Of a stretch of DNA of 64,000 nucleotides, positions 18,591 through 62,612 are shown piece after piece. The stretch is taken from positions 18,826,784 to 18,890,783 of the forward strand of contig CM121341.1 of the NCBI GenBank assembly GCA_051530055.1, given 5' to 3'. Numbering within the stretch: position 1 is the first letter of the stretch; each line of letters starts with the position of its first letter. This stretch comes from Neoechinorhynchus agilis. Lineage: Eukaryota > Animalia > Acanthocephala. The notes beneath the pieces are model-generated. The model searched no databases. It was not told where the DNA came from and saw only the letters and a program-made list of their open reading frames with translations. Position numbers and translations under genes: made by a program.

Positions 18591-20531
18591 TTAAACTTTT
18601 CTTTGTATTTTCATTAAGTGTTATATATAACCGTAGGTGAGTATAGGTAAAATAAAGAAGAAGTAAATAAAAACGTTTGTTGGCTTTTATACAAAAATAA
18701 CAAGAAGATTTATATATCACGTTAAACATGTAGATGGAAGCTTAACAAAATCATGAAATCCAACGTTCAATACGGGAAGCACAGAAATTCCTCAACTCTC
18801 CGGCCCATGGAAACGCCAAGAAATCTAGGTCTTGGTGGAAAGAGTATACAAAAACAGTCTATTGTTCTGGGAGCGACATCTTGAGACAAATACTAGTAGC
18901 TCTTCCAAAGAGCCTGCGATTGTGTTGAGATTATTCTAAGATTTGTGGCTCGTCTTGCTTTTTTTGATACCTAATTTAAGCATTTTTTCATTCTTTTCAA
19001 GTCAAATCTGGGTGAAAGATTCGCTGTAAAAGTGTGTCTTAGGATTCACAATTTTAGTAGAGTGATAGAATTTTCCGGCGGGCATCATTAGAATAGTTGA
19101 TAAGCTTGTTAAAAAATTTCCGATCTCAAAGAATATTTTAGGAATTATTATGTGAAACGCAGGATCACGATCGACGCCCAAAATCGATAATCTAATATTT
19201 ATCGATCTACCGAAGAATCACTTTAATTGAAATATCTCGTCCAATCACAGTGGACTTCTTAGGTTAATTATTGCTTGTAAGTTTCAAATGTGTCAGTTGG
19301 TGTAATTCTTTGATATATAATTTTTCCCCACTTCTATATACTCATGGATTTTATCTTTATTTATCGATCTAACGATTAGTGCAAGGCCGATTAACTGGCA
19401 TTAATTGAAATCAAACTATTTTTTAAGTTAATTAAGCATTGTCAATTTAATTTTATTATATTCCATCACCGCAAAAAACCGCCTTTCGAGAAATAGATCC
19501 TTAGACTTTAACGAAATATTGACAGTCTTTATCCAATGTTCATCATGGGAGATATGCTGTATTTTTAATATTGAAGAAAAAACTGAGATAGAAAATAAAC
19601 ATGAAGTTCGGTTGCAAGGTGGAAAATCCGCATGCATTTAACTGCAGTTTTCTTTAAATGCTCACTTAGATTCTCAAGCGGTGCTTACCATTCATTATAA
19701 CGAAAATTTTATAAAAGTCGATTTTAAACATGAGGTCGGCGAGATGGCACAAACGTCAATAGGGCACCGCAAGGAATTAGTTCTTCAAAGGCGATATCGT
19801 TAACTAACACTGCTTTTTTCTAAATCATCCGTTCGTCGGATTTGTAGTTAAAAAGAGCTATCCCCTTGTCTCGATAGGCGTTCATTATTATAATGTTGGA
19901 GAAGTCGAAAAATGCGATTAGTGAGTCTTAAAAAGATTTCGGATTCTTAAACCGACCATTAATTTGGGACGCATTAACGATAATAAAAATTTATTTTCGC
20001 AAAGACACCCTTTTGGCTCTGCTTCGTTCTCTTCTCGAAAATCTACAAAAAGCATTTAAAAATATGCCACCTTCAAACCGGGGAACCAGGAGTCAGAATG
20101 TAGCCACTACACCTACCCGGTAATGAAATAAGGCATTGATCTTATTGTCGTCACCTTCCCGCCATGGAATGGACTTAGACCATTAGATGTTGCCATATCA
20201 GTTTGTGGGTCAGGACGATAACTATTTTCGCATCGAGTAACATTCTGTGATTACCGCGGATCCAACAACGACCGCAACCTGACAATTTGCTAAAAATGAT
20301 GTATATGTTGCAACTATCTCTTCCAACATAAATTTGCTTCTATTCCGATGCTTTGCATTTGACAGACATTTAAACAAACATCACAAATGAGCAAAACTAC
20401 TTTATCCTCTCATTTCCGCACTCAAATAAGAGTTGCAAATATTTATTTGTTTTATAGTTATCAGTTACAAACGCTATACACTTTTACTGGTTTTGTAGCA
20501 ACGTTCCGCCCACCCCATAATTTAATTTGAT

Positions 20532-21733
20532 TCACAGTTGTTTCCGCACCGGAGATTCTTCACTGTCATCAGATTTATCATTCTTTGTGGACAATGATTT
20601 TTCTGCTTCATCTGCTTCTGCTTCTTGCATATCTGAGTCTCCATAAAGAATTTTCCAATCAAAGTCGAAACGCTGCAGTTGTTCGACTTTCCTATTAGCA
20701 CCGCTGTTTAAAAAAATCCTCCAATCATAATCGCGGCATTCCTTCGTAGCTTCGGACCAGTCGGTATGCTTATCTTCCTCTTCCTTTTTTTTCATAAGCT
20801 TTATCCACGAAATATGTGCCCGCCGGTGACTTCTGATATTAGATAAAGCGTCTGGTTCCGGTACACCTTCTGCCGTTATTCGCCTTAGGTATCCAGCGTC
20901 ATCTTCTTCTTCTGGCTTCATCTCGGTTACTTGAATATATTTCCCATCATATTCCTCGGACGAAGAAATCATATTTTCCCAGCTATCTTCAAATCTAATA
21001 TTTTGATCAATTTTGTTTTGATGAACTCGTACTGGCCGCATTTTTCCCTCTAAAGTTCCATCTGAATTGTTGTAAAAATCTCTTGAACTGCAAGCGGTAG
21101 CGGTGGAAGATTCAGCGCTAACAACGTAGTCGCTATCACTTGACGGGATGGGCCGATTTGCTTGGTCATCAAAACTATCGATTCCTGACCAGTCATCACT
21201 GGGGTCGCTGTGCAAATCTTCAATTGAATTTTCATTTGCAATTTCTTCTTGGGCGTGGTCTGAAAGGATTATATTAGCTTTTAATTAAAGAATACTTTAA
21301 ACTTACTTGTGGCATTTGGAATTTGTTCCGTGTTTTGAAAATTTTCGTCCGGGGAGGTGTGGTCGGCGGAATTGTTTTCGGGTACAACCTCCGAATTTGA
21401 CTTTTCAATTGTAACAGTACGACTTTTATCGCACACTCGAATGGTATAATCAAAATTCATTTCGTCATTTAACTTTGAATTTGATATTAGATCGCATATA
21501 TATTGCCTAGTGATGCTTACCTCATTTTTGAAGCGAACACTGCTAAGTATTGCATTATTAAAGCGGCCTATCAATTCCAGGCACAAGTTCAAATCCGCTA
21601 AGAAATCTGATGATCGCACAAATCCGGTTCGATCGGTTGTGAGAGATTCATGTAGGATGACTCGGTAAGTGAATACATCGTTTCCGCGTGGAAGTATTAG
21701 AAAACGAGGAATATTACAGCTTTGATTGTTCAT
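20532..21733 (-). CDS. Orphan palindrome gene, copy 1 (384 aa); exons 21733-21307, 21259-20532
   Basis: ORFs 21281-21733 and 20532-21215 are joined in frame by a 47-bp GTAAGT..TTTCAG intron. Confidence 0.8.
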
Positions 21734-23264
21734 CTAAAAGAAGATTTACAATTTTTAGGAAATTTCAAATTCGCTCTAATATAGGTTTGGAATGCGATAG
21801 CGAAGCCTGATGTATCCTATCGGTTGATGTTAGTTAGCAATGAGTATAGTTCTAAAGAGAACTGGCTGGATTCCTTTGTTCATATGGAGGAAATGAAGCT
21901 GATTGGTCGCACTTGTTCAGCATATCACGTTTCTTTTTCCATCAAACTTCAAATAACCGCAGTTGTTACATCAATCAATCGGCTTTTAAGTGGTAGACAC
22001 ACATCATATATTTGCACTCGGTGAGATCAGATTGTGGTCAATATAAAAAGGCCGCACCGAAAAATCTATTTTCTCATTGTTTCTTAACAATGGGAAAATA
22101 TAGATATTTTCACAGCTGTAGTTTTTATGGCACTTAATGTTCATAATAGACATTGATGGGGATAATTGATGATTACACAAACGTTTTGCTTTATGATGGG
22201 TCATTAAAAGCATTTCGTACAAATGAAATGACTTAATTTTAAAACTAATATTTATTCCACACATTTGTATATTAAGTGAAATGTTCAAAGCGAAGATTTA
22301 ATGAATTGATGTAATTTGTAACTATATTCTCCATAATTTTAATTGTTGACTGTAGTGTATCATTTTTTGAATATTTCGTTCGGATTTTTAGAAGCGTTGC
22401 TTTTGTCTTGACCTTTTAAATAATTTTTTATTAAAGCCTTTTGGAACATCTTCGGGTTTAATCAATAGTTTCTTTGTAAGTTTTCGCAATTGGGAAAACT
22501 AAAAAACGAGATTCGAAAACACTTTAATAAAAAAAATTATTTTAAACGCCAAGACCTAAACAACATTTTTAATCATATACCACGGTACATCGCATATCAA
22601 CTGTAGAATTTTCCTTCACGTTGTTAATCTTTTGCCGCGAAGCCTTTCAAAAGATTAGATTGGGCATATATGCTGCCTACTGCTGAAGATGATTTTTTCT
22701 TTTTAGGAGCAAATTTTTTGTTTATGCTTAGCAATAAATATTAGTTTTAAAATTATGCCATTTCATTGGTGCGAAATGTTTTCAATGTCCTATTATAAAG
22801 CAACACGCATGTGCAATTATCAATTATACCCATCAATGTTTATTATAAAAACTCAGTGCAATATAAACCGCAACCGTGAAAATAGCCATATTTTCTTATT
22901 TTTATAAAGAAACATGAAACTTTAAGACGATAGCTTAATCTCTTCGGCCTTTTATATTGACCATAATCTGATCTCACCGAGTGCAAATATATGATGTGTG
23001 TCTACCACTTAAAAGCTGATTGATTGATGTAACAACTGCGGTTATTTGATGTTTGATAGAAAAAGAAACGTGATATGCCGAACAAGTGTGACCAATCAGC
23101 TTCATTTCCTCCATATGAACAAAGGAATCCAGCCAGTTCTCTTTAGAACTACACTCATTGCTAACTAACGTCAACCGCTAGGATACACCAGACTTCGCTA
23201 TCGCATTCCAAACATATATTAGAGCGAATTTGAAATTTCCTAAAAATTGTAAATCTTCTTTTAG

Positions 23265-24475
23265 ATGAACAATCAAAGCTGTAATATTCCTCGTTTTCTA
23301 ATACTTCCACGCGGAAACGATGTATTCACTTACCGAGTCATCCTACATGAATCTCTCACAACCGATCGAACCGGATTTGTGGGATCATCAGATTTCTTAG
23401 CGGATTTGAACTTGTGCCTGGAATTGATAGGCCGCTTTAATAATGCAATACTTAGCAGTGTTCGCTTCATAAATGAGGTTAGCATCACTAGGGAATATAT
23501 AGGCGATCTAATATCAAATTCAAAGTTAAATGACGAAATGTATTTTGATTATACCATTCGTGTGTGCGATAAAAGTCGTACTGTTACAATTGAAAAGTCA
23601 AATTCGGAGGTTGTACCCGAAAAAAATTCCGCCGACCACACTTCCCCTTACGAAAATTTTCAAAACACGGAACAAATTCCAAATGCCACAAGTAAGTTTA
23701 AAATATTCTTTAATTAAAAACTAATATAATCCTTTCAGACCACGCCCAAGAAGACATTGCAAATGAGAACCCATTTGAAGATTTGCACAGCGACCCCAGT
23801 GATGACTGGTCAGGAATGGATAGTTTTTATGACCAAACACATCGGCCCATCCCATCAAGTGATAGCGACTACGTTGTTAGCGCTGAATCTTCCACCGCTA
23901 CCGCTTGCAGTTCAAAAGATTTTTACAACAATTCAGATGGAACTTTAGAAGGAAAAATGCGGCCAGTACGAGTTCATCAAAACAAAATTGATCAAAATAT
24001 TAGATTTGAAGATAGCTGGGAAAATATGATTTCTTCGTCCGAGGAATATGATGGGAAATATATTCAAGTAACCGAGATGAAGCCAGAAGAAGAAGATGAC
24101 GCTGGATACCTAAGGCGAATAACGGCAGAAGGTGTACCGGAACCAGACGCTTTATCTAATATCAGAAGTCACCGGCGGGCACATATTTCGTGGATAAAGC
24201 TTATGAAAAAAAAGGAAGAGGAAGATAAGCATATCGACTGGTCCGAAGCTACGAAGGAATGCCGCGATTATGATTGGAGGATTTTTTTAAACAGCGGTGC
24301 TAATAGGAAAGTCGAACAACTGCAGCGTTTCGACTTTGATTGGAAAATTCTTTATGGAGACTCAGATATGCAAGAAGCAGAAGAAGCAGAAGTGGAAGAA
24401 GCAGAAAAATCATTGTCAGCAAAGAATGATAAATCTGATGACAGTGAAGAATCTCCGGTGCGGAAACAACTGTGA
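23265..24475 (+). CDS. Orphan palindrome gene, copy 2 (387 aa); exons 23265-23691, 23739-24475
   Basis: 47-bp intron 23692-23738 (GTAAGT..TTTCAG) gives a continuous frame. Confidence 0.8.
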
Positions 24476-25577
24476 TTCAAATTAAATAATGGGGTGGGCG
24501 GAACGTTGCTACAAAACCAGTAAAAATGTATAGTGTTTGTAACTTATAAGGATAAAACAAATAAATATTTGCAACTCGTATTTGAGTGCGGAAATGAGAG
24601 GATAAAGCAGTTTTGCTCATTTGTAATGTTTGTTGAAATTGTCTGTCAAATGCAAAGCATCGGAATAGAGACAAATTTATGCTGGAAGAGATAATTGCAA
24701 CATATTGCTGCACACTTTCTGAAGTGAAATGTCCAGGCTCATTGCCACATTTGGCGAATTTTATTGATCTCTTGGATTTTCATTCATTTTTTTATTTGGG
24801 GCCCTGGGCACATTAAGTATCATTACTAAAAAGTACAATGAGATGAATAATGACACCAGCGACATCATTTTTAGCAAATTGTCGGGTTGCGGTCGTTGTT
24901 TGATCCGCGGTAATCACAGAATGTTACTCGATGCGAAAATAGTTATCGTCCTGACCCACAAACTGATATAGCAACATCTAATGGCGCTAACCATAAAACA
25001 AATAAATATTTGCAACTCGTATTTGAGTACGGAAATATTTTGAACTTATTTTTATTCCTCGACACAAATATTCGGAATGATAGTGCATTTTATTGGCAAT
25101 TGAGAAATTCCAAGAATAACTCTAATAATGCCAACAACGCATAAAATCTTTGAATGATACATTTTCGTGCTTTTGCTTGATGGTCGAATGATTTTATGCA
25201 CGTTGCCGGCTTCACACGTAGGTTCGTTCATTGTTTTAGTGTTACAAATTTATGTCGGATTTTTATTTATTTCATTGTATCAAGCTATCTTAAAGTATAA
25301 ATAATTATCTAAATTCGAAGAAGATTTGTCGATACCATGCGAATAAATGCAAAGATTATTAGGAACTAAAATATTTGTCAATACTGAATCGATCGAGGAA
25401 CGTCATAAGCTCAGTGCGCAATCAATATTTATAATGTGCTTATTAATATTGCGGAAGGAAATATTTTGTCATTAAGACGTTTCGATTGCGGTTTTCTTAT
25501 CACGAGTTAGAATCTACAGTCTATCAATTTTTATTGACACTTCTTCGTTGGAAGTTAAACTTTCTTTTTGAGAGTTA

Positions 25578-26915
25578 CTTTTTTTTAAAGAAAGATAAAT
25601 ATTTTAACAATTCAAACAATCTGTTTGAAGCACACTCCCCACATCCCGCCAAATTCCAGCTTTTGTCTTTCCTCGACCGTCGCCATCACGCTGGCAGTAT
25701 TGCCCCGTTGTACTGCCAGCGAGATATTTTGTCGAAGGAATACGCCTGCTCTTGAATCTCCGGTTGCCTCTCTCAATATCTTGGAGAGATCCTGGAGCAG
25801 AGAGAGTGCCGTGCTGCCGAGAGCTCCATACGTCTCTACCCCAAAGGGGACAAAATAGTGAGCCCTCGATAACTGAATATATTTCCGTATTTTCCTCCCT
25901 TCCGCTGTACTGGCGGCACCACCGGCGATTTCGAGGGAGTAGGGGATGTTGCTGGCTGCGAGGGCGTTCACACACGTGGCGTCCCAGAGAAGGCATTTGC
26001 CCTCCCGCCACGGGAAGACCGAAATTCCATCGGGCCTACGGCCGTCTAGTCGACAAAGGTGGGCGGGTTCCAGGATGTTCGGGAAGTTCGCCGTTCTCAA
26101 CGCCCGAGAAATTGCGTTATTGATTTCAGAATGACGTGAGAACCTTCCTCCTGACCTTCTGCAGACGAGACCGTGTCGCCCGAAAGCATCAACCAAAGAC
26201 CCACATCGACAGCGACGGGGCGTGCATATCGGGAGACCAAGTCTTAAGGATACTGCGATCCTCGTTACCTCATCAGTAAGAAGAGTTCCCACTGATGCCA
26301 GAGGAACAGCCTCCAACCACGCCCCAGATTCTCGTGTTGAAACTGCCAACTGTCTAGCTCGGACGACCCCATCGCGAGAACCGGAAAGTAGAGAGCTGTG
26401 AGCTCTCGCGACAAGAGTTCCGTCCCAGATCGACTGTCTGAGGCCATTCACGGGAACATGGTTAGCGCCTGTCTGCTGGCACCATTCCTCAACCGCCACC
26501 ACGAAATTCCGGTCAAGACAGAACTTTTCCTTCAAAATTTTCTTCGATACTGGTAGGCTCCCCTCAAACGATCCAAGAAAGGCCGGCAAAGCAAGGTCCA
26601 CTAGTGCCCGAATTCCCAATGCCCCAGATGACACAGGCAAAGAAGCTTGTCGCCACGCCCCATCCGAGAGCTGGACATTTAAAATACGCTCGAAGCAAGC
26701 CCCCACCTATCGTCCAGCTTTGCCAATCCTTTTTTGTGCTTGAAAAATGTTGCTGTGCGAACCTTGTACAATAATTTGGGGATGAAGAGCGCGTTCTTTA
26801 TGAGAAACAAGGTTTCATGAGCCGAGAGGGCGCACACCCTATCGCACAGCAACGAAAGTTTCGGTATGATATGGCCGATCTCATCTTCCACATTTGAATC
26901 GAAGACGCAACTAAG
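25578..26915 (-). mobile_element. CRE-like RLE retrotransposon family A, 5'-truncated
   Basis: CRCG..HGLVC..RHSEIN zinc motif, RPDGISVFPW..WDATC, VETYG restriction-like endonuclease; short poly(A) at about 25578-25586. Confidence 0.92.
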
Positions 26916-29599: not shown

Positions 29600-30475
29600 T
29601 TGACACTCAAATCTTTTTATGGCAGCGCTAGATGTAAAAGGGTTACCCATATTACAGGGAGTCACATCATGGCTCTCGCAGACCGGTCTGCAACAAGCTC
29701 CAACCAACGCGCACGAACAATCTGCTTGGGATAAACCCTTAATCCTGACGGCTCACAACAAACTAAAAGGCCAGATGGACGAGATGTCTCAAGCTAGACT
29801 TGTGGCCAGTTCCTCGAATGAGTCAGGCGCATGGTTGAACGTTTTGCCAATTGGTATTTTGGGAACTTTGCTGGACGACGAGACAGTTCGAATAGCCGTC
29901 GCTCTACGTTTAGGACTTCCAACCTGTGCCCCACACCAGTGCCGATGTGGAATAAAAGTTGACGTGCTCGGGAGACATGGACTCTACGGCAAGAGATCGA
30001 GCGGTCGTTTCCCAAGGCACGCAGAGCTCAACGCGATCATTAGCAGAGCTCTGAACTCGATACACGTTCCAACCATCCTGGAGCCCAATCACCTCTGTCG
30101 CTCGGATGGTAAGCGTCCCGACGGTATAACCGTTTTCCCTTGGAAAGAAGGGAAGAGTCTAATTTGGGACGCAACATGCGTGGACTCACTCGCCATGTCC
30201 AACCGGCAAGATGCTTTAGCGGAGACGGGAGGAGCAGCGAGTGCCGCCGAAAGGAGGAAAGCGGAGAAATACAATGAGCTGAAACAAAATTACATTTTCC
30301 TTCCTTTCGGCGAGGAGACACAAGGGGCGCTGGGATCTTCGGCACGAAGCTTTTGTGCCGAACTCGGAAGACGACTTGCAGCAGAAACAGGGGAGCGACG
30401 CGAGAGGATTTTCCTGATACAAAGAATAAGCCTCGCAATCCAACGAGGAAATGCGGTCAGCGTCCGGGGGGACGA
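29600..30475 (+). mobile_element. CRE-like RLE retrotransposon family B, 3' part
   Basis: ESGAWL, CRCG..HGL, RPDGITVFPW..WDATCVD, QRISLAIQRGNA. Confidence 0.9.
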
Positions 30476-39236: not shown

Positions 39237-39465
39237 TTGTTACGGCTACTCAGTAAAGCGTATTGAACTTTTTCCCCTTACAGCGCTAGCAAGAACTATT
39301 AATGAGGAATTGATCACTCCGAAACGCCCAGATGAGTCAAGGATTACTGAGGTTGGTTTGTTTGATCTGCTATGGTGTAGGCGCACTTGTTATTACCGAC
39401 GTTTTGATTAATATTATTTTGGTGGTAATAATCCCGGTAATAACACATTTGATTTTGATTTATTA

Positions 39466-43065: not shown

Positions 43066-43237
43066 TAATAACCTTCAATTCTTCCATATGAACAAAGGGA
43101 CCCAGAGAGTTCTCTTTAGAACTACACTCATTGCTAACTAACATCAACCGATAGGATACACCAGGCTTCGTTATCGCATTCCATACTTATATTAGAGCGA
43201 ATTTGAAATTTCCTAAAAATTGTAAATCTTCTTTTAG

Positions 43238-48344: not shown

Positions 48345-50110
48345 GATTTTTGTTAAAGTACAAAACGTGCAATCACCACCGTCCGCAAAATTGGAGCTTC
48401 TCTCCTTCCTCGGCTGTCGCTATCACACTAGCAGCATTGCCTCGTTGTACTGCAAGCGAGATATTTTGTCGCAGGAATACACCTGCTCGTGTGTCGCCGG
48501 TCGTTTCTCTCAATTTCTCCGAGAGATCCTGGTGCAGAGTGAGTGTCGAGCTGCCAAGTGCTCCATACGTCTCTACTCCGAAGGGGACAAAATAGTGGGC
48601 CCTTGCTAATTCTCTATATTTTCGTACCTTCCTCTCTTCCGCTGCACCTTCAGGGATTTCGAGAGAGTACGGAATGTTGCTTACTGCGAGAGAAGCCATT
48701 TACCTTCCCGCCACGGAAAGACCGAAATTAAGTCAGGTCGACGATCGTCTAGTCGACAAAGATTGGCGGGTTCCAAAATGTAGGGGAAGTTCGCCGTTCT
48801 CAACGCCCGAGAAATTATGCTATTGATCTCAGACTGGCGTGAGAACCTTCCCCCTGACTTTCGGCAAACGAGACCGTGTCGCCCGAAAGCATCAACCAAA
48901 GACCCACATCGACAGCGATGGGGCGTGCATATCGAGAGACAAAGTTTTAAGGATACTGCGATCCTCGTTACCTCATCAGTGAGACGAGTTCCCACATATG
49001 CCACAGGAACAGCCTCCAACCACGCCCCCGATTCTCGTGTCGAAACTGCCAACAATCTAGCTCGGACGACCCCATCGCGAGAACCTGAAAGTAGAGAGCT
49101 GTGAGCTCTCGCGACAAGAGTTCCGTCCCAGATCGACTGTCTGAGGCCATTCACGGGAACATGGTTAGCGCCTGTCTGCTGGCACATTCTTCAACTGCTA
49201 CCACAAAGTCTTGGTCAAGAAAAAACCTTCCCCTCAGAATTTTCTTAGCTATCGGTTGACTCCCCTCATACGATCCAACAAAGGCTGACAAGGCAAGGTT
49301 TCAACCGAGAGAGCGCTCACCCCATCGCACAGCAACGAAAGTTTCGGTATGATACGGCCGATCTCAACTTCCACATTTGAATCAAAGACGCAACTACCCA
49401 GGAGGCTGAGTTGCTCTCGAGTCACGAGTTTCAGACCTGGAGCTACGGCCTCGAACCCATCCATTAGCTCCTTGACTTTGGCGGCGTCTTCGATATTTAA
49501 TACTAAGAGCTCACACTTTCCAGCATTGAGCTCAATGCATATTCTCGAGGTCTCCCTAATCAGCATCTCCAAATCGCGCAGTACAACGGAGGGATAACAT
49601 CCGAGCGTAACGTCATCCAAGTACCAAGCGTTGAAGCTGGAATGGAGAGGGTGCGCTATTTGATTTACTGTTAGGGAGAATGCGATTGAGAGGATCTCCT
49701 TGCTGCACTCCTCTTTCGGACCAAATGAGGTGGTCTTCGAAAAGCAAAGGAGTCGCGGTTCCGTAGGCTTTGAGAAAATACTGGAAGGTTTTTCCTTGAT
49801 TGTTGATGTCAAAGACACCCCAGAATCATCACTAGTGCAAGGGACTAAGCGCGCGAATGCGAAGAGCCTTGTCCATGATGGCGTACAGTTCTTTTGGAGG
49901 CAATCGTTGAGCAATCCCGTGAATGCTTTGGCGACCTGATATCGTGCGCCCTTTGGGATACGTTTCGGGGCGTTCCTGGGCAGAACCCGCACGATATCAG
50001 ATATCGAAATAGAGTCAGTGGTGATCCGAGAGGTCCCAGGCATAAACAGATCGGTTGATTGTGGTGGAGAACCAGACCCGCTACAGCGGGATTTCGGGGA
50101 GCATGGGCAA
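48345..50110 (-). mobile_element. CRE-like family A element with internal deletions
   Basis: N-terminal PKRIPKGARYQVAK..WTRLFAF, RT WYLDDVTL, zinc motif and RLE domain. Confidence 0.9.
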
Positions 50111-51409: not shown

Positions 51410-52800
51410 TGTCAATTGAATTCGAATTTTCGACCCTTTCGTGGGTCTTCATCAGGATATCTAAAAAAGGAGAGGTTACTAATCCCAGTCCGCAATATCA
51501 ACTGGTAATCAGCTTTGTTGCCTTCCATCGTGTCGCGAACGTGCATGTGTATCGATTAAACGATAACACGCGAATATCGATCGTCACTACGCATCAAGAT
51601 TTTGACATCTATACGGGCAGCCTCTTTTTTTAAAAAGGATTTTCCAAAAATCAATTTCTGATTTCAAACAATATTGATCAGAACAGTAATTGTAGGCCCT
51701 ACGAAATAGTGCGGCCATTCTGCTAATTTTGTATTTTATTGGCTGGACAGATATCCATGGAACAGGCTGATTGGGGATACCAGGTTTTCGAAAAACCTTC
51801 GTATTAAAAACGTTAGTTCGCTCAACCAGGACATCTAGGAAAGGAAGTGATTTACATTCCTTCACATCAGCACTCCACTGAATCGAAGAATCTGGACGAT
51901 TTAAAATGTCACAGATTGACTATTCGCCAATAGAGCTGTCCACGAGGAGAAATGTATCATCAACATATTGTAACCATAATTATACAAATGTGAAATTACA
52001 TACATTGGCATCTTCCCAGTGGCGCATGTAGATTTCTGCCAGAATTGGGGCGATAGGACTACCCATGGCTAATCCATTAACCTGATCGTAATGTGCACCA
52101 TTGTACTGGAAATTATTTTCCTTCGTACAGAAAGTTAAAAGCTTCATCCGATCTGATACAGTAAGATTCCAGCCTTCATTATTTTCCAAGAGGAAAGAGA
52201 TAGCCAAATCGATGGCTTTCTCGACCGGAATTTTCGTGAATAGAGAGGTTACATCTGCAGAGATCATTCTGTGATCTATAAAATGCGTTTTAGTCCGAAG
52301 GACTTCAAGAAACTCAATCCCGGATGCAACAGCTTTATTACTGTGAGGTATAATCCTTTTTAGCATATTTGCAATGGACCGCGATAGAGAAGTGGTGTAT
52401 GTAGAGTGCGCGGCAATAATTGGTCTTAATTTTATGGGGTTTTTATGTACTTTGGCAAGGACGTACATTTTGGGGGTATGGGCACCAACTGATCTATTAG
52501 ATTTATAGAGATCATCACTCATCTTATTTTTTTGCTTTTTTAAATTGAGGAGAAAAGTGTTGAGAGCCTTTTCTCGTTTTTCCGTATGGCAATTTGGTAA
52601 TTTTTCAAATTCTAGACCTAATAAAATATCATTTGTAAGTGATTCTAATTGAGTGTCATTCATGACACAAAAACCATGGCCTTTATCTGTTTTAAGAATA
52701 TTTATACCTTTGATATTTTTTAAAATTTGGATCCCACGTCGCATTCGTGTTGGCAAATTCGAGCTGTTTTGTTGTAGGGAATTATTGTACGCATTTTCGA
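51410..52800 (-). mobile_element. Penelope-like element (RT, thumb, GIY-YIG tail, pLTR), internally deleted
   Basis: ILKTDKG, SADVTSLFTKIP, GLAMGSPIAP, QYVDDTF, LPFLDVLV, TMEGNKADY. Confidence 0.9.
51418..51455 (-). ncRNA. Hammerhead ribozyme (PLE pLTR)
   Basis: Minus strand CTGATGA a GACCC acgaaa GGGTC GAA AATTCGAATT C; 10-nt palindromic stem III; stem I partner not evident. Confidence 0.75.
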
Positions 52801-52803
52801 TTT

Positions 52804-52993
52804 GCAACCGGAGATTCAAGAGCAGGCGTATTCCTTCGACAAAATATCTCGCTGGCAGTACAACGGGGCAATACTGCCAGCGTGATGGCGACGGTCGAGG
52901 AAAGACAAAAGCTGGAATTTGGCGGGATGTGGGGAGTGTGTTAATTGTCGAGAGATGAAGATTGATTGAAATAAAATATTTTCGATTAAAAAA
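52804..52993 (+). mobile_element. CRE-like family A 3' fragment with poly(A)
   Basis: ATGDSRAGVFLRQNISLAVQRGNTAS; near-identical to the corresponding part of 25612-25780. Confidence 0.88.
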
Positions 52994-53897
52994 AACTTGA
53001 ATCACCCTTCAGTTTAAGAAGTCGAAATGCTCGAATTCATTTTAAATCACTCGAAAGAGCGCATCGACCCCGATCTATTAAAATAGCGAACGAAACGTGC
53101 ACTCGATTCGACGTTGAAAAACAAAAATTTGTAAATAGGAAAGAAAGCCGGTTTTGTTTTTAGGCGTCGATCGCATTACGTCGACATATTCATTTATTGA
53201 CTTTACGTTTTGTTATCGTCAGAGAATTACCAACGTTCACATAATAAAACGTATTTTAGACTTCAAGAGTTGTTTACAATATACGCGCTTTGTTTTTTAA
53301 AAACATAGAATTATTGAAAAAATTAATCTTCTTTCAATTCTTATTTCGAATGTCTCCGATTGACCGAAAAGCAGAAAGTACTTCAAACTAAAGAAGTTTT
53401 CGACAAATTCGAATTGTTAGACTGAAGCAAGCTGTTATATTTTATTTTACTATTAATGTTGTGAAGTACTAAATAACCGCAGTCTTAAAATAAAATTTAA
53501 ACCTTTTTGGTCCTTTGCTTACACCCTGCAAAGATATGCTCATAGAAATTGGGTTTATTTAACTAATTTTAGTTTCTTAAATACTAGGCGATAGGGGAAC
53601 TTTTAAAGATCCTTGTTCAGTCGCACATCAATCGATTGTCAAATAATATTCTTTTTCTGGACCGATCAACAAGTGCAATGAATAAACCATATCGATTTCC
53701 TTAATTCTGTAAACACGATGAATTGTTCGAAAGTATTGTCAATTAAGATTTGTTCTTTATGTGTAACAACCAGAAAGAAATAATATGTAGAATTAAAAGA
53801 AATATCGGCGTGAAAAAGCATTTGGTATTCCTGATTTCGGGGTCAAAACGTAATTCTTGCGATAATTTGAAAGGCTAATCTCGCCAAAGAATACACA
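52993..53897 (+). repeat. About 905-bp direct repeat, copy 1 (partner 61695-62599)
   Basis: Near-identical from acttgaatcacccttc to gccaaagaatacaca. Confidence 0.9.
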
Positions 53898-53914
53898 GTC
53901 AATATCCTGAAGAC

Positions 53915-54020: not shown

Positions 54021-55490
54021 AATGTGATTGTTTATTCCGGAGTGGATTACGATTCCGGTCGAACACTAAAGATAGTGGTTAATGCTTGTAAGTTTATAAG
54101 GTTGGGTCTTTAGTCCGATTCATTTCGGATCCTGATATCTGAGAAGATTGGGAGTGTAATAGCACGTATTATTTTAGTCAAAGTTGAGGAACGGTTATAT
54201 CTAGGTCCTCTGGAACACTCGAGTTCTGAACAGCTTAAATGAATGTGGTTGTTTATTTCTCAGTAGATGACGGTTCCAGTTCAACGGGAAAGTTAGTGGT
54301 TATTGTTTATAGGAGAGTTTGTCAGGTTCGGTAGCATCTCCTGCCGTGCAATACATCCAGTGAACCTACCTGATCTCCCATATTTATCCTAAAAGAAAAA
54401 TAATTTACGTGAAACTTTAGTATGGACGAATTTGTTTTGGCATTAAGCTCCAATCGGTCCAGGGCTTTTAACCGCAACTCTGCTTCTCAAAAAATACCCT
54501 CAATAGTTAGCTCTCTGAAAGACCTTCTTGTGCATGTTACCTCAATAAATTGAGCTTCGATGATTTTTAAAAAATCAAAACAAATAATGCAATCGTTATT
54601 TTGAAGTATAAGAGCGCAAATACGCTACTCAGTGACTCAGTATTACGTCACAGATTTTTAAACCTAACCGTCTCGTGTCTTAAACGAATGATAAATTCTA
54701 AACATATACATATTTAGATTTTTGTCACCTAATTCTACAGATTTTCACGGGTTTATTCGTCACTGTAGAATACAATCTCTGTTAGCGGAACTCCATTTTA
54801 TGAATGAGATCGCTGATGCAAATAAACTATTAATCCAACTGAATCTAAACAAAGTATTCGGGACATTAGACAAAGTACTCTTATATAAGATCTTATTTCA
54901 TTTTAATATAAGGTCTTAATATGATTTCTAAGATTCAATACTTGATGGAATCCAAATCTTATTATAAAATATGGCCTTCAACAGAGATCACCTCTTTCAC
55001 TGATCGCCGAGTTGCGGCAGCACAAAATATGCATAATAGGAGCCCCCTTGCATTGAAATCTTAAATGCCATAACTCTGAAAATCGTAGGCACATCGTTAA
55101 GATTTTAGTCTCGTCAATGAAACCCACACTCAAAGATAACGATACATCAACTGTTCCCGAGCTGAGGATCGCATAATCGGTATTGTTGTTATTTTGGCAC
55201 AAATATTTAAAATTAAAAATGTTATATTCCTATTTAATGAGCTTAAAGTCATTTTGATTTTATTATTGTGATGGATTAAACTTAGGAAAATTATTGTCCT
55301 TGACAGATACTTATGACAGATTAACAAATTCTTAGGATAAAATCTCTAAGAGATTCACCAATATCGACAAATGTATTAAAAGGCGGTCCCAACAATAGAC
55401 ATTTCAATCAGAAAGTGTGCAGAAACATGTTGCAACTATCTCTTCCAACATAAATTTGCTTCTATTCCGATGCTTTGCATTTGACAGACA

Positions 55491-55669
55491 AACTGGGGCA
55501 TCGACTGATCAACTCGACCAATGACAGGAGGGCTCGCTCGATCCTAGTGCAGAACATATCCTTGGCTATCAAGCGAGGAAACGCAGCGAGTGTCTTGGGG
55601 ACGGTGAAGGACAATTGAGAATAATATAAGTTTATTTAATAATAATAAAATTACATTTGAAAAAAAAAA
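55491..55669 (+). mobile_element. 179-bp 5'-truncated CRE-like insertion (another family) with poly(A)
   Basis: DRRARSILVQNISLAIKRGNAASVLGT then an A-run; absent at the homologous site in palindrome 1 (gacagaca|tttaaac, about 20368); no clear TSD. Confidence 0.85.
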
Positions 55670-55832
55670 TTTAAACAAACATCACAAATGAGCAAAACTA
55701 CTTTATCCTCTCATTTCCGCACTCAAATAAGAGTTGCAAATATTTATTTGTTTTATAGTTATCAGTTACAAACGCTATACACTTTTACTGGTTTTGTAGC
55801 AACGTTCCGCCCACCCCATAATTTAATTTGAT

Positions 55833-57034
55833 TCACAGTTGTTTCCGCACCGGAGATTCTTCACTGTCATCAGATTTATCATTCTTTGCGGACAATGATT
55901 TTTCTGCTTCATCTGCTTCTGCTTCTTGCATATCTGAGTCTCCATAAAGAATTTTCCAATCAAAGTCGAAACGCTGCAGTTGTTCGACTTTCCTATTAGC
56001 ACCGCTGTTTAAAAAAATCCTCCAATCATAATCGCGGCATTCCTTCGTAGCTTCGGACCAGTCGGTATGCTTATCTTCCTCTTCCTTTTTTTTCATAAGC
56101 TTTATCCATGAAATATGTGCCCGCCGGTGACTTCTGATATTAGATAAAGCGTCTGGTTCCGGTACACCTTCTGCCGTTATTCGCCTTAGGTATCCAGCGT
56201 CATCTTCTTCTTCTGGCTTCATCTCGGTTACTTGAATATATTTCCCGTCATATTCCTCGGACGAAGAAATCATATTTTCCCAGCTATCTTCAAATCTAAT
56301 ATTTTGATCAATTTTGTTTTGATGAACTCGTACTGGCCGCATTTTTCCCTCTAAAGTTCCATCTGAATTGTTGTAAAAATCTCTTGAACTGCAAGCGGTA
56401 GCGGTGGAAGATTCAGCGCTAACAACGTAGTCGCTATCACTTGACGGGATGGGCCGATTTGCTTGGTCATCAAAACTATCGATTCCTGACCAGTCATCAC
56501 TGGGGTCGCTGTGCAAATCTTCAATTGAATTTTCATTTGCAATTTCTTCTTGGGCGTGGTCTGAAAGGATTATATTAGCTTTTAATTAACGAATATTTTA
56601 AACTTACTTGTGGCATTTGGAATTTGTTCCGTGTTTTGAAAATTTTCGTCCGGGGAGGTGTGGTCGGCGGAATTGTTTTCGGGTACAACCTCCGAATTTG
56701 ACTTTTCAATTGTAACAGTACGACTTTTATCGCACACTCGAATGGTATAATCAAAATTCATTTCGTCATTTAACTTTGAATTTGATATTAGATCGCCTAT
56801 ATATTGCCAAGTGATGCTTACCTCATTTTTGAAGCGAACACTGCTAAGTATTGCATTATTAAAGCGGCCTATCAATTCCAGGCACAAGTTCAAATCCGCT
56901 AAGAAATCTGATGATCCCACAAATCCGGTTCGATCGGTTGTGAGAGATTCATGTAGGATGACTCGGTAAGTGAATACATCGTTTCCGCGTGGAAGTATTA
57001 GAAAACGAGGAATATTACAGCTTTGATTGTTCAT
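55833..57034 (-). CDS. Orphan palindrome gene, copy 5
   Basis: Intact two-exon frame; a few aa differences from copy 1. Confidence 0.8.
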
Positions 57035-58566
57035 CTAAAAGAAGATTTACAATTTTTAGGAAATTTCAAATTCGCTCTAATATATGTTTGGAATGCGATA
57101 GCGAAGCCTGATGTGTCCTATCGGTTGATGTTAGTTAGCAATGAGTACAGTTCTAAAGAGAACTGGCTGGATTCCTTTGTTCATATGGAGGAAATGAAGC
57201 TGATTGGTCGCACTTGTTCAGCATATCACGTTTCTTTTTCCATCAAACTTCAAATAAACGCAGTTGTTACATCAATCAATCGGCTTTTAAGTGGTAGACA
57301 CACATCATATATTTGCACTCGGTGAGATCAGATTGTGGTAAATATAAAAAGGCCGCACCGAAAAATCTATTATCTCATTGTTTCTTAACAATGGGAAAAT
57401 ATAGATATTTTCACAGCTGTAGTTTTTATGGCACTTAATGTTCATAATAGACATTGATGGGGATAATTGATGATTACACAAACGTTTTGCTTTATGATGG
57501 GTCATTAAAAGCATTTCGTACAAATGAAATGACTTAATTTTAATACTAATATTTATTCCACACATTTGTATATTAAGTTAAATGTTCAAAGCGAAGATTT
57601 AATGAATTGATGTAATTTGTAACTATATTCTCCATAATTTTAATTGTTGACTGTAGTGTATCATTTTTTGAATATTTCGTTCGGATTTTTAGAAGCGTTG
57701 CTTTTGTCTTGACCTTTTAAATAATTTTTTATTAAAGCCTTTTGGAACATCTTCGGGTTTAATCAATAGTTTCTTTGTAAGTTTTCGCAATTGGGAAAAC
57801 TAAAAAACGAGATTCGAAAACACTTTAATAAAAAAAATTATTTAAAACGCCAAGACCTAAACAACATTTTTAATCATATACCACGGTACATCGCATATCA
57901 ACTGTAGAATTTTCCTTCACGTTGTTAATCTTTTGCCGCGAAGCCTTTCAAAAGATTAGATTGGGCATATATGCTGCCTACTGCTGAAGATGATTTTTTC
58001 TTTTTAGGAGCAAATTTTTTGTCTATGCTTAGCAAATAAATATTAGTTTTAAAATTATGCCATTTCATTGGTGCGAAATGTTTTCAATGTCCTATTATAA
58101 AGCAACACGCAAGTGCAATTATCAATTATACCCATCAATGTTTATTATAAACATTCAGTGCAATATAAACCGCAACCGTGAAAATAGCCATATTTTCTTA
58201 TTTTTTTAAAGAAACATGAAACTTTAAGACGATAGCTTAATTTCTTCGGCCTTTTATATTGACCATAATCTGATCTCACCGAGTGCAAATATATGATGTG
58301 TGTCTACCACTTAAAAGCTGATTGATTGATGTAACAACTGCGGTTATTTGATGTTTGATAGAAAAAGAAACGTGATATGCTGAACAAGTGCGACCAATCA
58401 GCTTCATTTCCTCCATATGAACAAAGGAATCCAGCCAGTTCTCTTTAGAACTACACTCATTGCTAACTAACGTCAACCGATAGGATACACCAGACTTCGC
58501 TATCGCATTCCAAACCTATATTAGAGCGAATTTGAAATTTCCTAAAAATTGTAAATCTTCTTTTAG

Positions 58567-59777
58567 ATGAACAATCAAAGCTGTAATATTCCTCGTTTTC
58601 TAATACTTCCACGCGGAAACGATGTATTCACTTACCGAGTCATCCTACATGAATCTCTCACAACCGATCGAACCGGATTTGTGGGATCATCAGATTTCTT
58701 AGCGGATTTGAACTTGTGCCTGGAATTGATAGGCCGCTTTAATAATGCAATACTTAGCAGTGTTCGCTTCATAAATGAGGTTAGCATCACTAGGGAATAT
58801 ATAGGCGATCTAATATCAAATTCAAAGTTAAATGACGAAATGTATTTTGATTATACCATTCGTGTGTGCGATAAAAGTCGTACTGTTACAATTGAAAAGT
58901 CAAATTCGGAGGTTGTACCCGAAAAAAATTCCGCCGACCACACTTCCCCTTACGAAAATTTTCAAAACACGGAACAAATTCCAAATGCCACAAGTAAGTT
59001 TAAAATATTCTTTAATTAAAAACTAATATAATCCTTTCAGACCACGCCCAAGAAGACATTGCAAATGAGAACCCATTTGAAGATTTGCACAGCGACCCCA
59101 GTGATGACTGGTCAGGAATGGATAGTTTTTATGACCAAACACATCGGCCCATCCCATCAAGTGATAGCGACTACGTTGTTAGCGCTGAATCTTCCACCGC
59201 TACCGCTTGCAGTTCAAAAGATTTTTACAACAATTCAGATGGAACTTTAGAAGGAAAAATGCGGCCAGTACGAGTTCATCAAAACAAAATTGATCAAAAT
59301 ATTAGATTTGAAGATAGCTGGGAAAATATGATTTCTTCGTCCGAGGAATATGATGGGAAATATATTCAAGTAACCGAGATGAAGCCAGAAGAAGAAGATG
59401 ACGCTGGATACCTAAGGCGAATAACGGCAGAAGGTGTACCGGAACCAGACGCTTTATCTAATATCAGAAGTCACCGGCGGGCACATATTTCGTGGATAAA
59501 GCTTATGAAAAAAAAGGAAGAGGAAGATAAGCATATCGACTGGTCCGAAGCTACGAAGGAATGCCGCGATTATGATTGGAGGATTTTTTTAAACAGCGGT
59601 GCTAATAGGAAAGTCGAACAACTGCAGCGTTTCGACTTTGATTGGAAAATTCTTTATGGAGACTCAGATATGCAAGAAGCAGAAGAAGCAGAAGTGGAAG
59701 AAGCAGAAAAATCATTGTCAGCAAAGAATGATAAATCTGATGACAGTGAAGAATCTCCGGTGCGGAAACAACTGTGA
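58567..59777 (+). CDS. Orphan palindrome gene, copy 6
   Basis: Intact; both ORF translations are identical to copy 2. Confidence 0.8.
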
Positions 59778-61694
59778 TTCAAATTAAATTATGGGGTGGG
59801 CGGAACGTTGCTACAAAACCAGTAAAAGTGTATAGCGTTTGTAACTGATAAGGATAAAACAAATAAATATTTGCAACTCGTATTTGAGTGCGGAAATGAG
59901 AGGATAAAGCAGTTTTGCTCATTTGTAATGTTTGTTGAAATTGTCTGTCAAATGCAAAGCATCGGAATAGAGACAAATTTATGCTGGAAGAGATAATTGC
60001 AACATATTGCTGCACACTTTCTGTTGAAATGTGTTGTTGGGACCGTCTTTTTATACATTTGCCGATATTGATGAATCTCTTAGAGATTTTATCGTAAGAA
60101 TTTGTCAATCTGTCATAAGGATCTGTCAAGGACAACAATTTTCCTAAGTTTAATCCATCACAATAATAAAATCAAAATGACTTTAAGCTCATTAAATAGG
60201 AATATAACATTTTGAATTTAAAATATTTGTGCCAAAATAACAACAATACCGATTATGCGATCCTCAGCTCGGGGACAGTTGATGTATCGTTATCTTTGAT
60301 TGTGCAATCCCGACGAATCTTTTCCCTTTGGGTTTCATTGACGAGACTAAAATCTTAACGATGTGCCTACGATTTTCAGAGTTATGGCATTTAGCTTTTC
60401 AATGCAAGGAGGCTCCTGTAAGCATATTTTGTGCTGCTGCAACTCGGCGATCAGTGAAAGAGGTGATCTCTGTTGAACTCCATTTCTGGAAAAAAGATTT
60501 GGATTCCATCAAGTATTGAATCTTAGAAATCATATTAAGACCTTATATTAAAATGAAATAAGATCTTATATAAGAGTACTTTGTCTAATGCCCCGAATAC
60601 TTTGTTTAGATTCAGTTGGATTAATAGTTTATTTGCATCAACGATCTCATTCATAAAATGGAGTTCCGCTAACAGAGATTGTATTCTACAGCGACGAATA
60701 AACCCGTGAAAATCTGTGGAATTAGATGACAAGAATCTTAAAATGTATATATTTAGAATTTATCATTCGTTTAAGACACGAGATGATCGATTTTCTAGAG
60801 TTGTTCTTCGATGAAAAAACTTCGACTTTACCTCGCCTTAGAAAGGAATGCGAAGGTACTACACTAATTGACTTGAATCATTTATACACTGAGCAAGAAT
60901 ACCTGCAAGAAAATCGCTATGGTACGAAGGTTTGCCCAATGACAAATTACTATCATAAAGGACTTAATAACAAACAGAAACCGCTTGTTGATAACTTAGT
61001 AGCATATTGAAGATTCCAATGGAACTCAGCAGAGAAATTTACTCGAGGACAACTAAAAGAGAAACCAAGCGCTTAAATCCAAAGCGAACTATACAAATCG
61101 CAGCGCACGAAACGGGTCAGAATGAAGCGAATCGAATTTAGAAAAAAGCTAAAAAACAACAACAAGGAGATATCTGCAATCCAAGGAGACCGAGAATCTA
61201 AATCAAAGTCGAAAATGTCACAGGAAAGGAGAAGTCTGATCCACATCCATCTTTCCAATAGTGACAGAACCTCAGAATCTAATGGAAACCAAGAGCATTC
61301 AACTTGACAAAGAGATCAAAACACAAAAAAGCAAGATCGTTGTTGTGTCGTTTGGTAAAAGGCGTAATCGCTAGGTTTATGCGTCGTTTACAAGGGATCC
61401 TTCGATTTACATCGAAATCTATTCTAAAATGTAAACTGATAACTGCTAAGTAAAAAACTCTCTCTGAGTGTAAAATTCTGACGTTTACAATTTCTTTAAA
61501 ACGCAAACACAATAACGTTCAAGTAAAATCAAACATTCTCACGAACAAAAGTTTTTCTAGGTTTTTCCATTGCTTCATCTACTCTGAAACATCAGTCTGC
61601 AATTTTAGTGCGGAACAAAGTTAGATGATTTCCGCAGTTCAAAATATTACCGCAATTCCATGGAAAAATTGAAAGATTGATTTCCTTTTTAAAT

Positions 61695-62599: not shown

Positions 62600-62612
62600 A
62601 TAATATTTTATT

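Follow-up and report, generated by a model that had tools for sequence, protein, structure and literature searches.

Six copies of a taxonomically restricted gene in three head-to-head palindromes of Neoechinorhynchus agilis, with apparent exchange between palindromes

The window analysed here is a stretch of 64,000 nucleotides from chromosome CM121341.1 of the thorny-headed worm Neoechinorhynchus agilis (18.83-18.89 Mb). It comes from a single ONT R9.4 and Illumina hybrid assembly of DNA pooled from about 50 worms (PMC12690905), on which both the gene copy number and the duplication between P1 and P3 described below depend. Long reads of at least 5 kb went into this assembly, and the region contains no N runs or gaps. 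The N. agilis genome paper makes no sex-chromosome assignment. Three head-to-head inverted repeats, P1 to P3, hold six copies of one gene, four intact and two broken, placed divergently around central spacers, in agreement, positions included, with the initial annotation. The repeat unit is an arm of 2-3 kb composed of upstream region, gene and 3' flank, and inverted repeats of such length and identity cannot have arisen by chance. The neighbourhood of the palindromes is rich in retroelements. The features of the palindromes, in window coordinates, are as follows.

P1: inverted repeat, arms 20181-22256 and 22733-24983, 94.1% identity over 1975 nt, spacer of 476 nt
20181-22256, minus strand: P1 left arm, containing copy A
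21733-20532, minus strand: copy A, exon 1 21733-21307, intron 21306-21260, exon 2 21259-20532; intact, 384 aa
22257-22732, no strand: P1 spacer, with a decayed inner inverted repeat (22388-22446 / 22512-22572)
22733-24983, plus strand: P1 right arm, containing copy B
23265-24475, plus strand: copy B, exon 1 23265-23691, intron 23692-23738, exon 2 23739-24475; intact, 387 aa
P2: inverted repeat, arms 39752-41501 and 43067-44786, 96.9% identity over 1074 nt and 96.8% over 285 nt
39752-41501, minus strand: P2 left arm, containing copy C
41501-40552, minus strand: copy C, cut at 41501 with the first ~83 codons missing; 2-bp deletion (frameshift)
43067-44786, plus strand: P2 right arm, containing copy D
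43238-44430, plus strand: copy D, 2-bp and 1-bp deletions (two frameshifts); first stop at codon 58
P3: inverted repeat, arms 54671-57557 and 58035-60783, 94.4% identity over 1912 nt and 91.3% over 847 nt, spacer of 477 nt
54671-57557, minus strand: P3 left arm, containing copy E, with a "type II" outer part
57034-55833, minus strand: copy E, exon 1 57034-56608, intron 56607-56561, exon 2 56560-55833; intact, 384 aa
57558-58034, no strand: P3 spacer, differing from that of P1 by 3 substitutions and 1 indel
58035-60783, plus strand: P3 right arm, containing copy F, with a type II outer part
58567-59777, plus strand: copy F, exon 1 58567-58993, intron 58994-59040, exon 2 59041-59777; intact, 387 aa

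The "type I" 3' flank of the P1 right arm runs on unpaired to 25581 and that of the P2 right arm to about 45722. The P2 arms are separated by a 1.57-kb fragment of a Penelope-like element (PLE), and the left arm of P3 carries an arm-specific, poly(A)-tailed LINE fragment of 178 nt (55491-55668).

The gene consists of two exons and a 47-bp GT..AG intron and encodes a product of 384 or 387 aa in the intact copies, which bears out the two-exon gene of about 385 aa proposed initially. In copy B the intron (GTAAGT..TTTCAG) leaves the reading frame continuous over the splice, and after splicing its product matches the deposited model ACOME3_004529 at 100% identity. Transcription of the gene is implied by a BRAKER model using RNA-seq hints (PMC12690905). 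The 47-nt intron is kept in all 12 copies examined, those on other chromosomes included, and its presence in every copy argues for copying at the DNA level. The protein is acidic (pI 4.6) and mostly disordered, and no hydrophobic segment, signal peptide or membrane segment was found in it. The earlier statement that it lacks a recognisable domain holds: Pfam yields no family even at E<=10, except for one noise match at E=4.1, and the PDB yields no match. Nor was it found to be a known TE accessory protein within ordinary TIRs. Its relatives among 1.84 billion representative proteins, from databases with few acanthocephalan proteomes, are N. agilis proteins only.

Values of dN/dS, an analysis that the initial annotation had proposed, are significantly below 1 in 7 of the 8 comparisons that include a live lineage: they range from 0.18 to 0.48 inside the locus and are about 0.4 between clusters (Fisher p 1e-4 to 4e-9 across both sets), against 0.78 for one pair of dead copies. 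In intact copies every coding indel has a length divisible by 3, whereas non-coding indels are not so restricted. The gene thus appears to be a real protein-coding, taxonomically restricted (orphan) gene whose frame is under purifying selection, a selection that constitutes the sole functional evidence for the protein. The restriction of its relatives to N. agilis and the dN/dS values lend support to the proposal of a lineage-specific amplified family.

Arm identities are 99.2% for A-E and for B-F, 94.1% for A-B, 94.4% for E-F and 96.9% for C-D. The closest relative of each arm of P1 and P3 is the same-orientation arm of the other palindrome, 35 kb away, and genes B and F are identical. P1 and P3 differ by 35 substitutions over 4.37 kb, with 0 in the interval 23215-24487 against 14.4 expected (Poisson P=6e-7). 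Along the length of the arm pairs, divergence is mosaic and varies from 0.5% to 19.5%. Between A and B it is 19.5% at 22733-22932, beside the spacer, where the arms are about 80% alike, 11-19% at the arm edges and 0.5% (2/400 sites) over the 3' half of the coding region. This last value is compatible with an arm-to-arm conversion tract. Copies B and G, the latter situated about 10 kb past the window end, differ by 0.6% upstream and by 8-12% within the gene, while the flanks of F and G are 99.8% alike and their genes 94%. The head-to-head pair is old, its arms standing 6% apart overall and about 19% beside the centre.

The initial annotation had drawn a parallel with mammalian sex chromosomes, on which arm-to-arm gene conversion maintains gene-bearing palindromes; applied to N. 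agilis, this proposal has such conversion preserving the palindromes and keeping the paired copies intact. The proposal would fit with the intact state of all four genes of P1 and P3, with A and B diverging far less over the 3' half of their coding region than at the arm edges, and with a slightly smaller distance between genes A and B (2.5%) than between A or B and C or D (3.2-4.1%). However, comparison of the arms does not support it. Mammalian sex-chromosome palindromes have arm identities above 99.9%, against 94% overall here. Same-orientation arms of P1 and P3, at 99.2%, are far closer than partner arms, which argues for exchange between palindromes and not from arm to arm. Moreover, P1 and P3 hold the same A-type and B-type differences, so that no arm-to-arm homogenisation has taken place since their separation, and C and D are broken although paired. 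Arm-to-arm maintenance is therefore improbable. Homogenisation instead appears to be family-wide, mosaic and between palindromes. The core appears to have been copied or overwritten between P1 and P3, presumably by non-allelic recombination or gene conversion acting across the family. Duplication followed by flank replacement is an alternative to conversion for P1 and P3. Neither duplication nor conversion fully accounts for the symmetric breakpoints 24732/60032 and the mirror positions.

The inner inverted repeat of P1 is centred at about 22490, the midpoint of the arms being 22494.5. This central hairpin is decayed (z=-2.9), whereas its homologue in L004, a paralogue on another chromosome, is well preserved (L004 9669-9859) and forms an almost perfect hairpin (-54.6 kcal/mol, z=-12.9). 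P1, P3 and G were all assembled with the same asymmetric centre. Large palindromes can be nucleated by short inverted repeats beside a break (PMC2444050), and the position of the centre on a decayed hairpin that is preserved in L004 suggests an inverted duplication of foldback type. Alternatively, the central hairpin may be a residue of the palindrome and not its seed.

The retroelements surrounding the palindromes include the following.

17690-20181, plus strand: 5'-truncated PLE, with the end of a GIY-YIG ORF (17637-18122) and a long 3' region (18485-20181)
35275-39233, plus strand: LINE-like retroelement with a zinc-knuckle ORF1 and an RT ORF2
39234-39751, minus strand: PLE 3' piece, running from near residue 108 of the GIY-YIG ORF into the 3' region
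41502-43068, plus strand: PLE 5' piece, with RT and the start of GIY-YIG; its ORF 41597-43141 reads into arm D
52978-53897, plus strand: left member of a pair of 920-nt direct repeats (98.2%) framing P3
61680-62600, plus strand: right member of the pair of 920-nt direct repeats framing P3

The 3' end of the first PLE abuts the outer end of arm A at 20181. The LINE-like element is inserted in a PLE 3' region with a target-site duplication of about 10 bp, TTGTTACGGC. The left 920-nt repeat adjoins a second PLE-like RT ORF (51599-53005, minus strand), and beyond the right one a pair of inverted repeats (62595-62856 / 63769-64030) encloses a third (62983-63708).

In P2, the first 155 nt of the PLE 5' piece (41501-41655) repeat part of its interior in inverted form (42731-42567), and the inverted 3' piece abuts the outer end of arm C. 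By reference to the intact copy at 17.9 kb, the pieces 41502-43068 (plus) and 39751-39234 (minus) break at most 15 nt apart, the 5' piece stopping 15 nt before the start of the 3' piece. P2 is probably a secondary structure, because the PLE is split within 15 nt and its pieces flank arm C in opposite orientations; we infer a former tandem pair made inverted by a single inversion. The PLE in P2 is an agent of damage and rearrangement, not of spread. The inversion model leaves the loss of the first 83 codons of C unexplained.

It was also suggested initially that PLEs may have helped the gene to spread. In its full form, this explanation has PLEs mobilising, in trans, a gene that retains its intron, and treats the head-to-head pairs as inverted, 5'-truncated insertions of PLE type; an inverted 5'-truncated copy typically adjoins PLE insertions (PMC8557442). 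The proximity of the elements stands, since PLE pieces abut arms A (20181) and C (39751/39752) and occupy the centre of P2, and P3 is framed by the 920-nt direct repeats adjoining PLE-like RT ORFs. The intron is kept in all copies on three sequence records, which plain DNA duplication predicts likewise. However, the features by which mobilisation of genes by PLEs is recognised, pseudo-LTRs (pLTRs) around the gene and a target-site duplication (TSD) (PMC3846280), were not found: PLE-derived sequence lies neither inside the arms nor symmetrically around single gene copies, no terminal repeats framing the gene were found, and no target-site duplication was seen at the ends of P1 or P3, other insertions having truncated most arm ends. 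For P3 taken as a whole, the 920-nt direct repeats beside PLE-like ORFs might still represent such a frame. Moreover, the arms have no common 3' terminus, they extend over more than 500 nt upstream, their symmetry reaches to within a few nt of the centre and so does not resemble an asymmetric 5' truncation, and the copies lie in local clusters amid other duplicated segments. In the window, no hammerhead ribozyme passes the Rfam gathering threshold. Mobilisation by PLEs is consequently unlikely.

A mobile foldback-like transposon, in which the palindrome core would have terminal inverted repeats of about 2 kb each carrying an ORF, is suggested by the occurrence of the 4.4-kb core twice at 99.2% between unrelated outer flanks (type I versus type II). 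It is very doubtful, given that the flanks beyond the core also form inverted repeats in P1 and P3, as insertion would not produce, that target-site duplications and any similarity to a transposase or other TE protein are absent, and that the unit in the single-arm copies G and L004-L008 has different boundaries; a foldback or long-TIR DNA transposon was rejected on the variable boundaries, the missing TSDs and the inverted flanks. Equally hard to credit is an assembly artefact, from foldback or chimeric long reads or from head-to-head scaffolding of haplotypes as in the 2013 Adineta vaga assembly: the hybrid assembly of pooled worms, the origin of an earlier rotifer assembly's palindromes in haplotype scaffolding (PMC8494291) and a P1-P3 identity within the range of allelic divergence leave room for it, but the arms are not foldback copies, because they are about 6% divergent with many indels; the flanks of P1 and P3 are unrelated to the left as well as to the right, so that the two palindromes are not haplotypes of a single locus; the sequence has no N gaps; the asymmetric centre recurs in P1, P3 and G; and the reads of at least 5 kb exceed the 4.4-kb core.

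At least six additional copies exist, all dead: G just past the window end, a second cluster of four, and a single copy on an unplaced scaffold. The family therefore comprises four intact copies (two protein variants) and at least eight dead ones, spread over three sequence records. The copies are mixed with other duplicated segments in local clusters, and the single-arm copies G and L004-L008 have the unit with different boundaries. Dead copies with common lesions (loss of the ATG, an 8-bp deletion, a +1 insertion and an in-frame TAG) are still 96-98% alike in at least five places, and the five copies beyond this locus appear to have been amplified after disablement. The evolution of the family is one of birth and death.

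The reading that we regard as probable, with some reserve, combines a species-restricted gene, segmental duplication at the DNA level, family-wide exchange, a foldback origin, the P2 inversion and birth-and-death. The gene would have multiplied by DNA-level segmental duplication in a recombination-prone stretch, without a transposon of its own. An inverted duplication on a hairpin-forming repeat of about 190 nt, some 775 nt upstream of the start codon, would have produced the head-to-head pair, the paired genes being transcribed outward from a common 1.5-kb region. Later, the 4.4-kb core may have been copied or overwritten between the P1 and P3 sites, 35 kb apart, and segments may have been swapped among the same-orientation copies B, F and G. 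A tandem pair C-D beside a PLE would have become the inverted pair P2 through one inversion, and in the second amplicon cluster, on another chromosome, members would have been disabled first and amplified afterwards.

The ampliconic palindromes of the mammalian X and Y chromosomes share with this locus inverted arms around a unique spacer with one gene copy per arm, a young multi-copy gene, several palindromes per region and dead copies beside live ones. Their arms measure tens of kb to Mb, whereas those of N. agilis are 2-2.9 kb long and about 94% alike, with the nearest relative in another palindrome. The Dox-family drivers of Drosophila simulans and their hairpin-RNA suppressors (PMC10292708, PMC10317233) likewise associate a young, fast-changing amplified family with inverted repeats derived from it, a resemblance that for N. 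agilis would be structural only. In Adineta vaga, which also belongs to the Syndermata, intron-containing genes mobilised by PLEs (PMC3846280) keep their intron and show inverted arrangements and adjacent PLEs; the N. agilis gene differs in having no framing pseudo-LTRs or TSD and in the clustering of its copies within larger duplicated blocks. The foldback palindromes of Tetrahymena, yeast and mammalian gene amplification (PMC2444050) have their centre of symmetry on a short hairpin-forming repeat, as here, but the N. agilis event would be germline and evolutionarily old, and is deduced from anatomy alone. The hairpin-forming repeat of N. agilis also occurs beside single-arm paralogues.

Concerted evolution and birth-and-death of tandem or inverted multigene families through non-allelic gene conversion are well established. 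The N. agilis family resembles these in its mosaic identity, its gene-centred tracts, one identical pair 35 kb apart and its accumulating pseudogenes. It differs from them in the converted unit, which here would be a whole palindrome core comprising both arms and the spacer.

The window carries, as far as sequence comparison can tell, a real small ampliconic system with a constrained orphan gene. Self-comparison recovers three head-to-head inverted repeats (palindromes P1, P2 and P3) at the positions proposed in the initial annotation, each holding two divergent gene copies, all with their 5' ends facing the palindrome centres. Four of these six copies are intact and two are broken, again as proposed.

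Palindromes and gene copies in the window (arms bear the letters of their copies).
P1: 20181-22256 (arm A) and 22733-24983 (arm B), 94.1% identical, spacer 476 nt
P2: 39752-41501 (arm C) and 43067-44786 (arm D), 96.9% identical
P3: 54671-57557 (arm E) and 58035-60783 (arm F), identity 94.4% (inner part) and 91.3% (outer part), spacer 477 nt
Copies A and E: minus strand, intact, 384 aa each
Copies B and F: plus strand, intact, 387 aa each
Copy C: minus strand, cut at about codon 84, with a frameshift
Copy D: plus strand, 2-bp and 1-bp deletions

The 47-nt intron predicted in copy B (23692-23738, GTAAGT..TTTCAG) preserves the reading frame and is retained in every copy. The full two-exon, 384-aa frame is intact in both A and E, despite the shorter models of 368 aa (20532-21733) and 169 aa (55833-57034), respectively, in the deposited annotation (BRAKER with RNA-seq; PMC12690905). 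Copy D is absent from that annotation, and the deposited model of copy C has an extra intron that skips its frameshift.

The spliced protein is a 100% match to a deposited model of N. agilis (Acanthocephala), and a HMMER search of 1.84 billion representative proteins matched N. agilis proteins only, as expected of a lineage-specific family. No domain is recognisable: searches with both exon pieces and the whole protein found no Pfam family even at E<=10, the sole match, to an acidic viral histone-binding family (E=4.1), being noise, and a PDB sequence search found no relative. The protein is acidic (pI 4.6), with no hydrophobic segment; its N-terminal ~110 aa have predicted secondary structure and are followed by a long middle part, acidic and rich in Ser, and the C-terminal part holds four of the six acidic-Trp motifs. 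A single-sequence AlphaFold2 model was unusable (mean pLDDT 34.5). The reading frame has been under constraint. Copies within the locus give dN/dS ratios of 0.18-0.48, and comparison with the other clusters gives ~0.4 (Fisher p 1e-4 to 4e-9); for a pair of dead copies the ratio is 0.78. In live copies coding indels are multiples of three, whereas flank indels are not.

The window spans 18,826,784-18,890,783 of the 19.38-Mb chromosome CM121341.1, ~0.5 Mb from its end. The 46.2-Mb assembly combines ONT and Illumina reads from a pool of ~50 worms with Hi-C scaffolding, and the genome paper gives no sex-chromosome, karyotype, repeat or heterozygosity information (PMC12690905). The palindromes might be an assembly artefact, made of foldback chimeras or merged haplotypes, and there is a precedent in Adineta vaga, where haplotypes were scaffolded together (PMC8494291). 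However, foldback chimeras would be expected to yield identical arms, and the arms differ by 6%, with indels. Moreover, the same asymmetric centre was assembled three times, and the flanks of P1 and P3 differ on both sides, so they cannot be one locus assembled as two haplotypes. N runs are absent from the region.

Ordinary host genes are interspersed with the amplicons, so that the cluster is not a gene-free repeat block: the end of an amidohydrolase gene (13265-13348), a dynein-light-chain-like ORF with a weak Pfam match (32753-33385, plus strand) and, further on, an Abl-interactor/SH3 gene (66496-67835 of the extended sequence, which is the window plus the DNA beyond; record L002). The last lies between copy F and a seventh copy, G (ACOME3_004532), ~10 kb beyond the window end. 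Scanning the window for Rfam families, tRNAs and tandem repeats gave no matches, and no hammerhead ribozyme was found in it. Inverted arrangements are frequent throughout the stretch, and several are unrelated to the orphan gene: an 880-nt inverted pair of LINE RT sequence (9776-10654 and 16817-17696) and two short self-complementary stretches (1780-1963 and 5717-6041).

Copy G is a single arm that retains the centre and 73 nt of the opposite side and has a premature stop at codon 265. Comparison of the arms shows the palindromes to be old and mosaic.

Arm identities over the ~1.9-kb core.
A-E: 99.2%
B-F: 99.2%
A-B: 94.1%
E-F: 94.4%
C-D: 96.9%
G versus other copies: 91-94%

Upkeep by arm-to-arm conversion, the analogy first drawn, is not what these values indicate: there is no preferential arm-to-arm homogenisation, the partner arms of P1 and P3 being ~94% identical as against 99.2% for A-E and B-F. 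The whole palindrome core, spacer included, is a direct repeat between P1 (20368-24732) and P3 (55669-60032), with 35 substitutions spread across both arms and spacer. A tract that covers the B/F gene together with the 50 nt before it and the 12 nt after it (23215-24487) is free of substitutions (0 observed vs 14.4 expected, P=6e-7). Partner arms diverge very unevenly: by 19.5% beside the spacer, 3-6% upstream, 2.5-5.5% over the 5' half of the gene, 0.5% over its 3' half and 4-11% beyond it; within that 3' half, a short tract of arm-to-arm exchange is conceivable. B and G differ by 0.6% upstream and by 8-12% within the gene, and the outer flanks of F and G are 99.8% alike. Two kinds of outer (3') flank occur, type I on P1 and P2 and adjoining paralogues on other records, type II on P3 and G. 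They are unrelated (local score 28; shuffled sequences averaged 25 and reached 34), and their apparent alignment by MAFFT was rejected. The arm mosaic reads as the product of exchange among copies, chiefly same-orientation ones 15-50 kb apart. P1 and P3 did not arise by a simple tandem duplication of 35 kb, since no other segment has that offset. A 44-nt direct repeat (24552-24595 and 24993-25036) brackets a ~400-nt segment that arms B and C contain, and A contains in part; arm D and every paralogue on other records lack it. The breakpoint between type I and type II flanks falls inside this segment.

Beyond the locus, the family has a second cluster on CM121343.1 (1.26-1.38 Mb) and, on an unplaced scaffold of 74 kb, a single copy. 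These five copies have common lesions: a lost start codon, an 8-bp deletion, a +1 insertion and an in-frame TAG. Those of the second cluster, in both orientations, are 96-98% alike, which implies that amplification went on after coding capacity was lost; amplification is a property of the DNA region and not only of selection on the protein. The second cluster includes a 5-kb inverted pair, 99.7% identical and ~16 kb apart (L004 3810-8797 vs L008 4981-1; CM121343.1 ~1.344-1.371 Mb). The copy in record L004 has a palindrome partner of 262 nt only, and none was found for the copies in L005-L008.

The centre of the palindromes points to how they may have begun. The P1 spacer contains a decayed inner inverted repeat (22388-22446 and 22512-22572) centred at ~22490, as against 22494.5 for the midpoint of the arms. 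Its homologue upstream of a paralogue (L004 9669-9859) is a near-perfect ~190-nt hairpin, with a folding energy of -54.6 kcal/mol (z=-12.9, vs z=-2.9 for the P1 version). Large palindromes can be nucleated by short inverted repeats adjoining a break (PMC2444050), and the inverted duplication was probably seeded by a hairpin repeat of this kind lying upstream of one single-arm unit.

P2 seems to have another history. Its centre (41502-43068) is occupied by a Penelope-like element (PLE) with an RT followed by a C-terminal GIY-YIG motif, GIYRIQCEQCEKVYIGKT. The first 155 nt of the element are an inverted copy of its interior, a feature typical of PLEs (PMC8557442), and the element ends inside the GIY-YIG region; the missing remainder, resuming after 15 nt, adjoins the outer end of arm C in inverted orientation (39751-39234). 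The two parts are contiguous in a copy at 17.7-18.5 kb. A single inversion of the PLE 5' piece together with C would restore an intact minus-strand PLE followed by C and D in tandem, and P2 is thus most simply read as a secondary inverted pair. A second PLE has its 3' end against arm A at 20181, so that PLE pieces do sit at palindrome boundaries (arms A and C) and in the P2 centre, in keeping with the initial annotation. Other retroelements have also entered. A LINE insertion with a target-site duplication of ~10 nt occupies 35275-39233, and arm E alone carries a 178-nt poly(A)-tailed LINE fragment (55491-55668, 10-A tail) from the 3' end of an element with a 364-aa ORF (25612-26706). This fragment is younger than the P1/P3 split, which indicates recent activity of its family. 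The ~360-aa ORF recurs (25612-26706 and 48376-49300, minus strand; 29619-30548, plus strand; 65237-65686 and 77924-78991 of the extended sequence) and has no Pfam match; its Cys/His and PDG...WD motifs resemble the restriction-enzyme-like endonuclease end of a LINE. Its 3' end adjoins the outer flank of arm B.

Whether PLEs also helped to spread the gene, as had been suggested, receives a divided answer. The signature of PLE gene mobilisation, pseudo-LTRs framing a gene with a target-site duplication (PMC3846280), was not found at the gene copies: the arms contain no PLE-derived sequence and lack a common 3' end, their symmetry extends to the palindrome centre, and no target-site duplications were found at the ends of P1 and P3. 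On the other hand, 920-nt direct repeats (52978-53897 and 61680-62600, 98.2%) adjoining PLE-like RT ORFs frame P3, and a PLE may therefore have had a part in moving a larger block containing it. The repeat that frames P3 also forms the 1-kb arms of a palindrome in the second cluster (L004 337-1372 vs 3956-5137). Beside F, a PLE-like RT segment with 262-nt inverted repeats (62595-64000, continuing to ~64030 outside the window) has a counterpart beside G in the opposite orientation (L001; 80080-81355 of the extended sequence). The flank around both is 99% identical, and the arrangement looks like a flip between the 262-nt repeats.

It is probable that the hairpin repeat seeded the palindromes, that non-allelic exchange reshuffled them and that retroelements damaged them. 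The locus offers a natural series, from a hairpin seed by a single arm through intact palindromes to an inverted wreck with a split PLE, that could reveal the birth and decay of palindromes and their reshaping by retroelements, especially PLEs. If sex-biased or germline-specific, the gene would be a candidate for acanthocephalan-specific reproductive biology.

A very improbable further reading, modelled on the Drosophila simulans Dox/hpRNA system, is intragenomic conflict, in which intact copies would be selfish or dosage-sensitive and degraded inverted pairs would be sources of hairpin RNA silencing the family. P2 is the clearest hairpin-RNA candidate: over ~1.1 kb its two arms show 97% complementarity, and immediately upstream, on the same strand, is a long LINE that seems close to full length, from which read-through would give antisense-C, loop and sense-D in one transcript. 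If true, it would be the first example from beyond the arthropods, housed in a parasite genome of 46 Mb.

Most known gene-bearing palindromes are those of vertebrate sex chromosomes, and arm-to-arm conversion is believed to safeguard the genes there. In contrast, 94% arm identity persists here and exchange takes place between palindromes instead. The locus joins the known palindromic and ampliconic young gene families that evolve by birth and death, and falls outside the class of conversion-maintained palindromes, to which it provides a small and tractable counter-example from an invertebrate whose genome is very compact.
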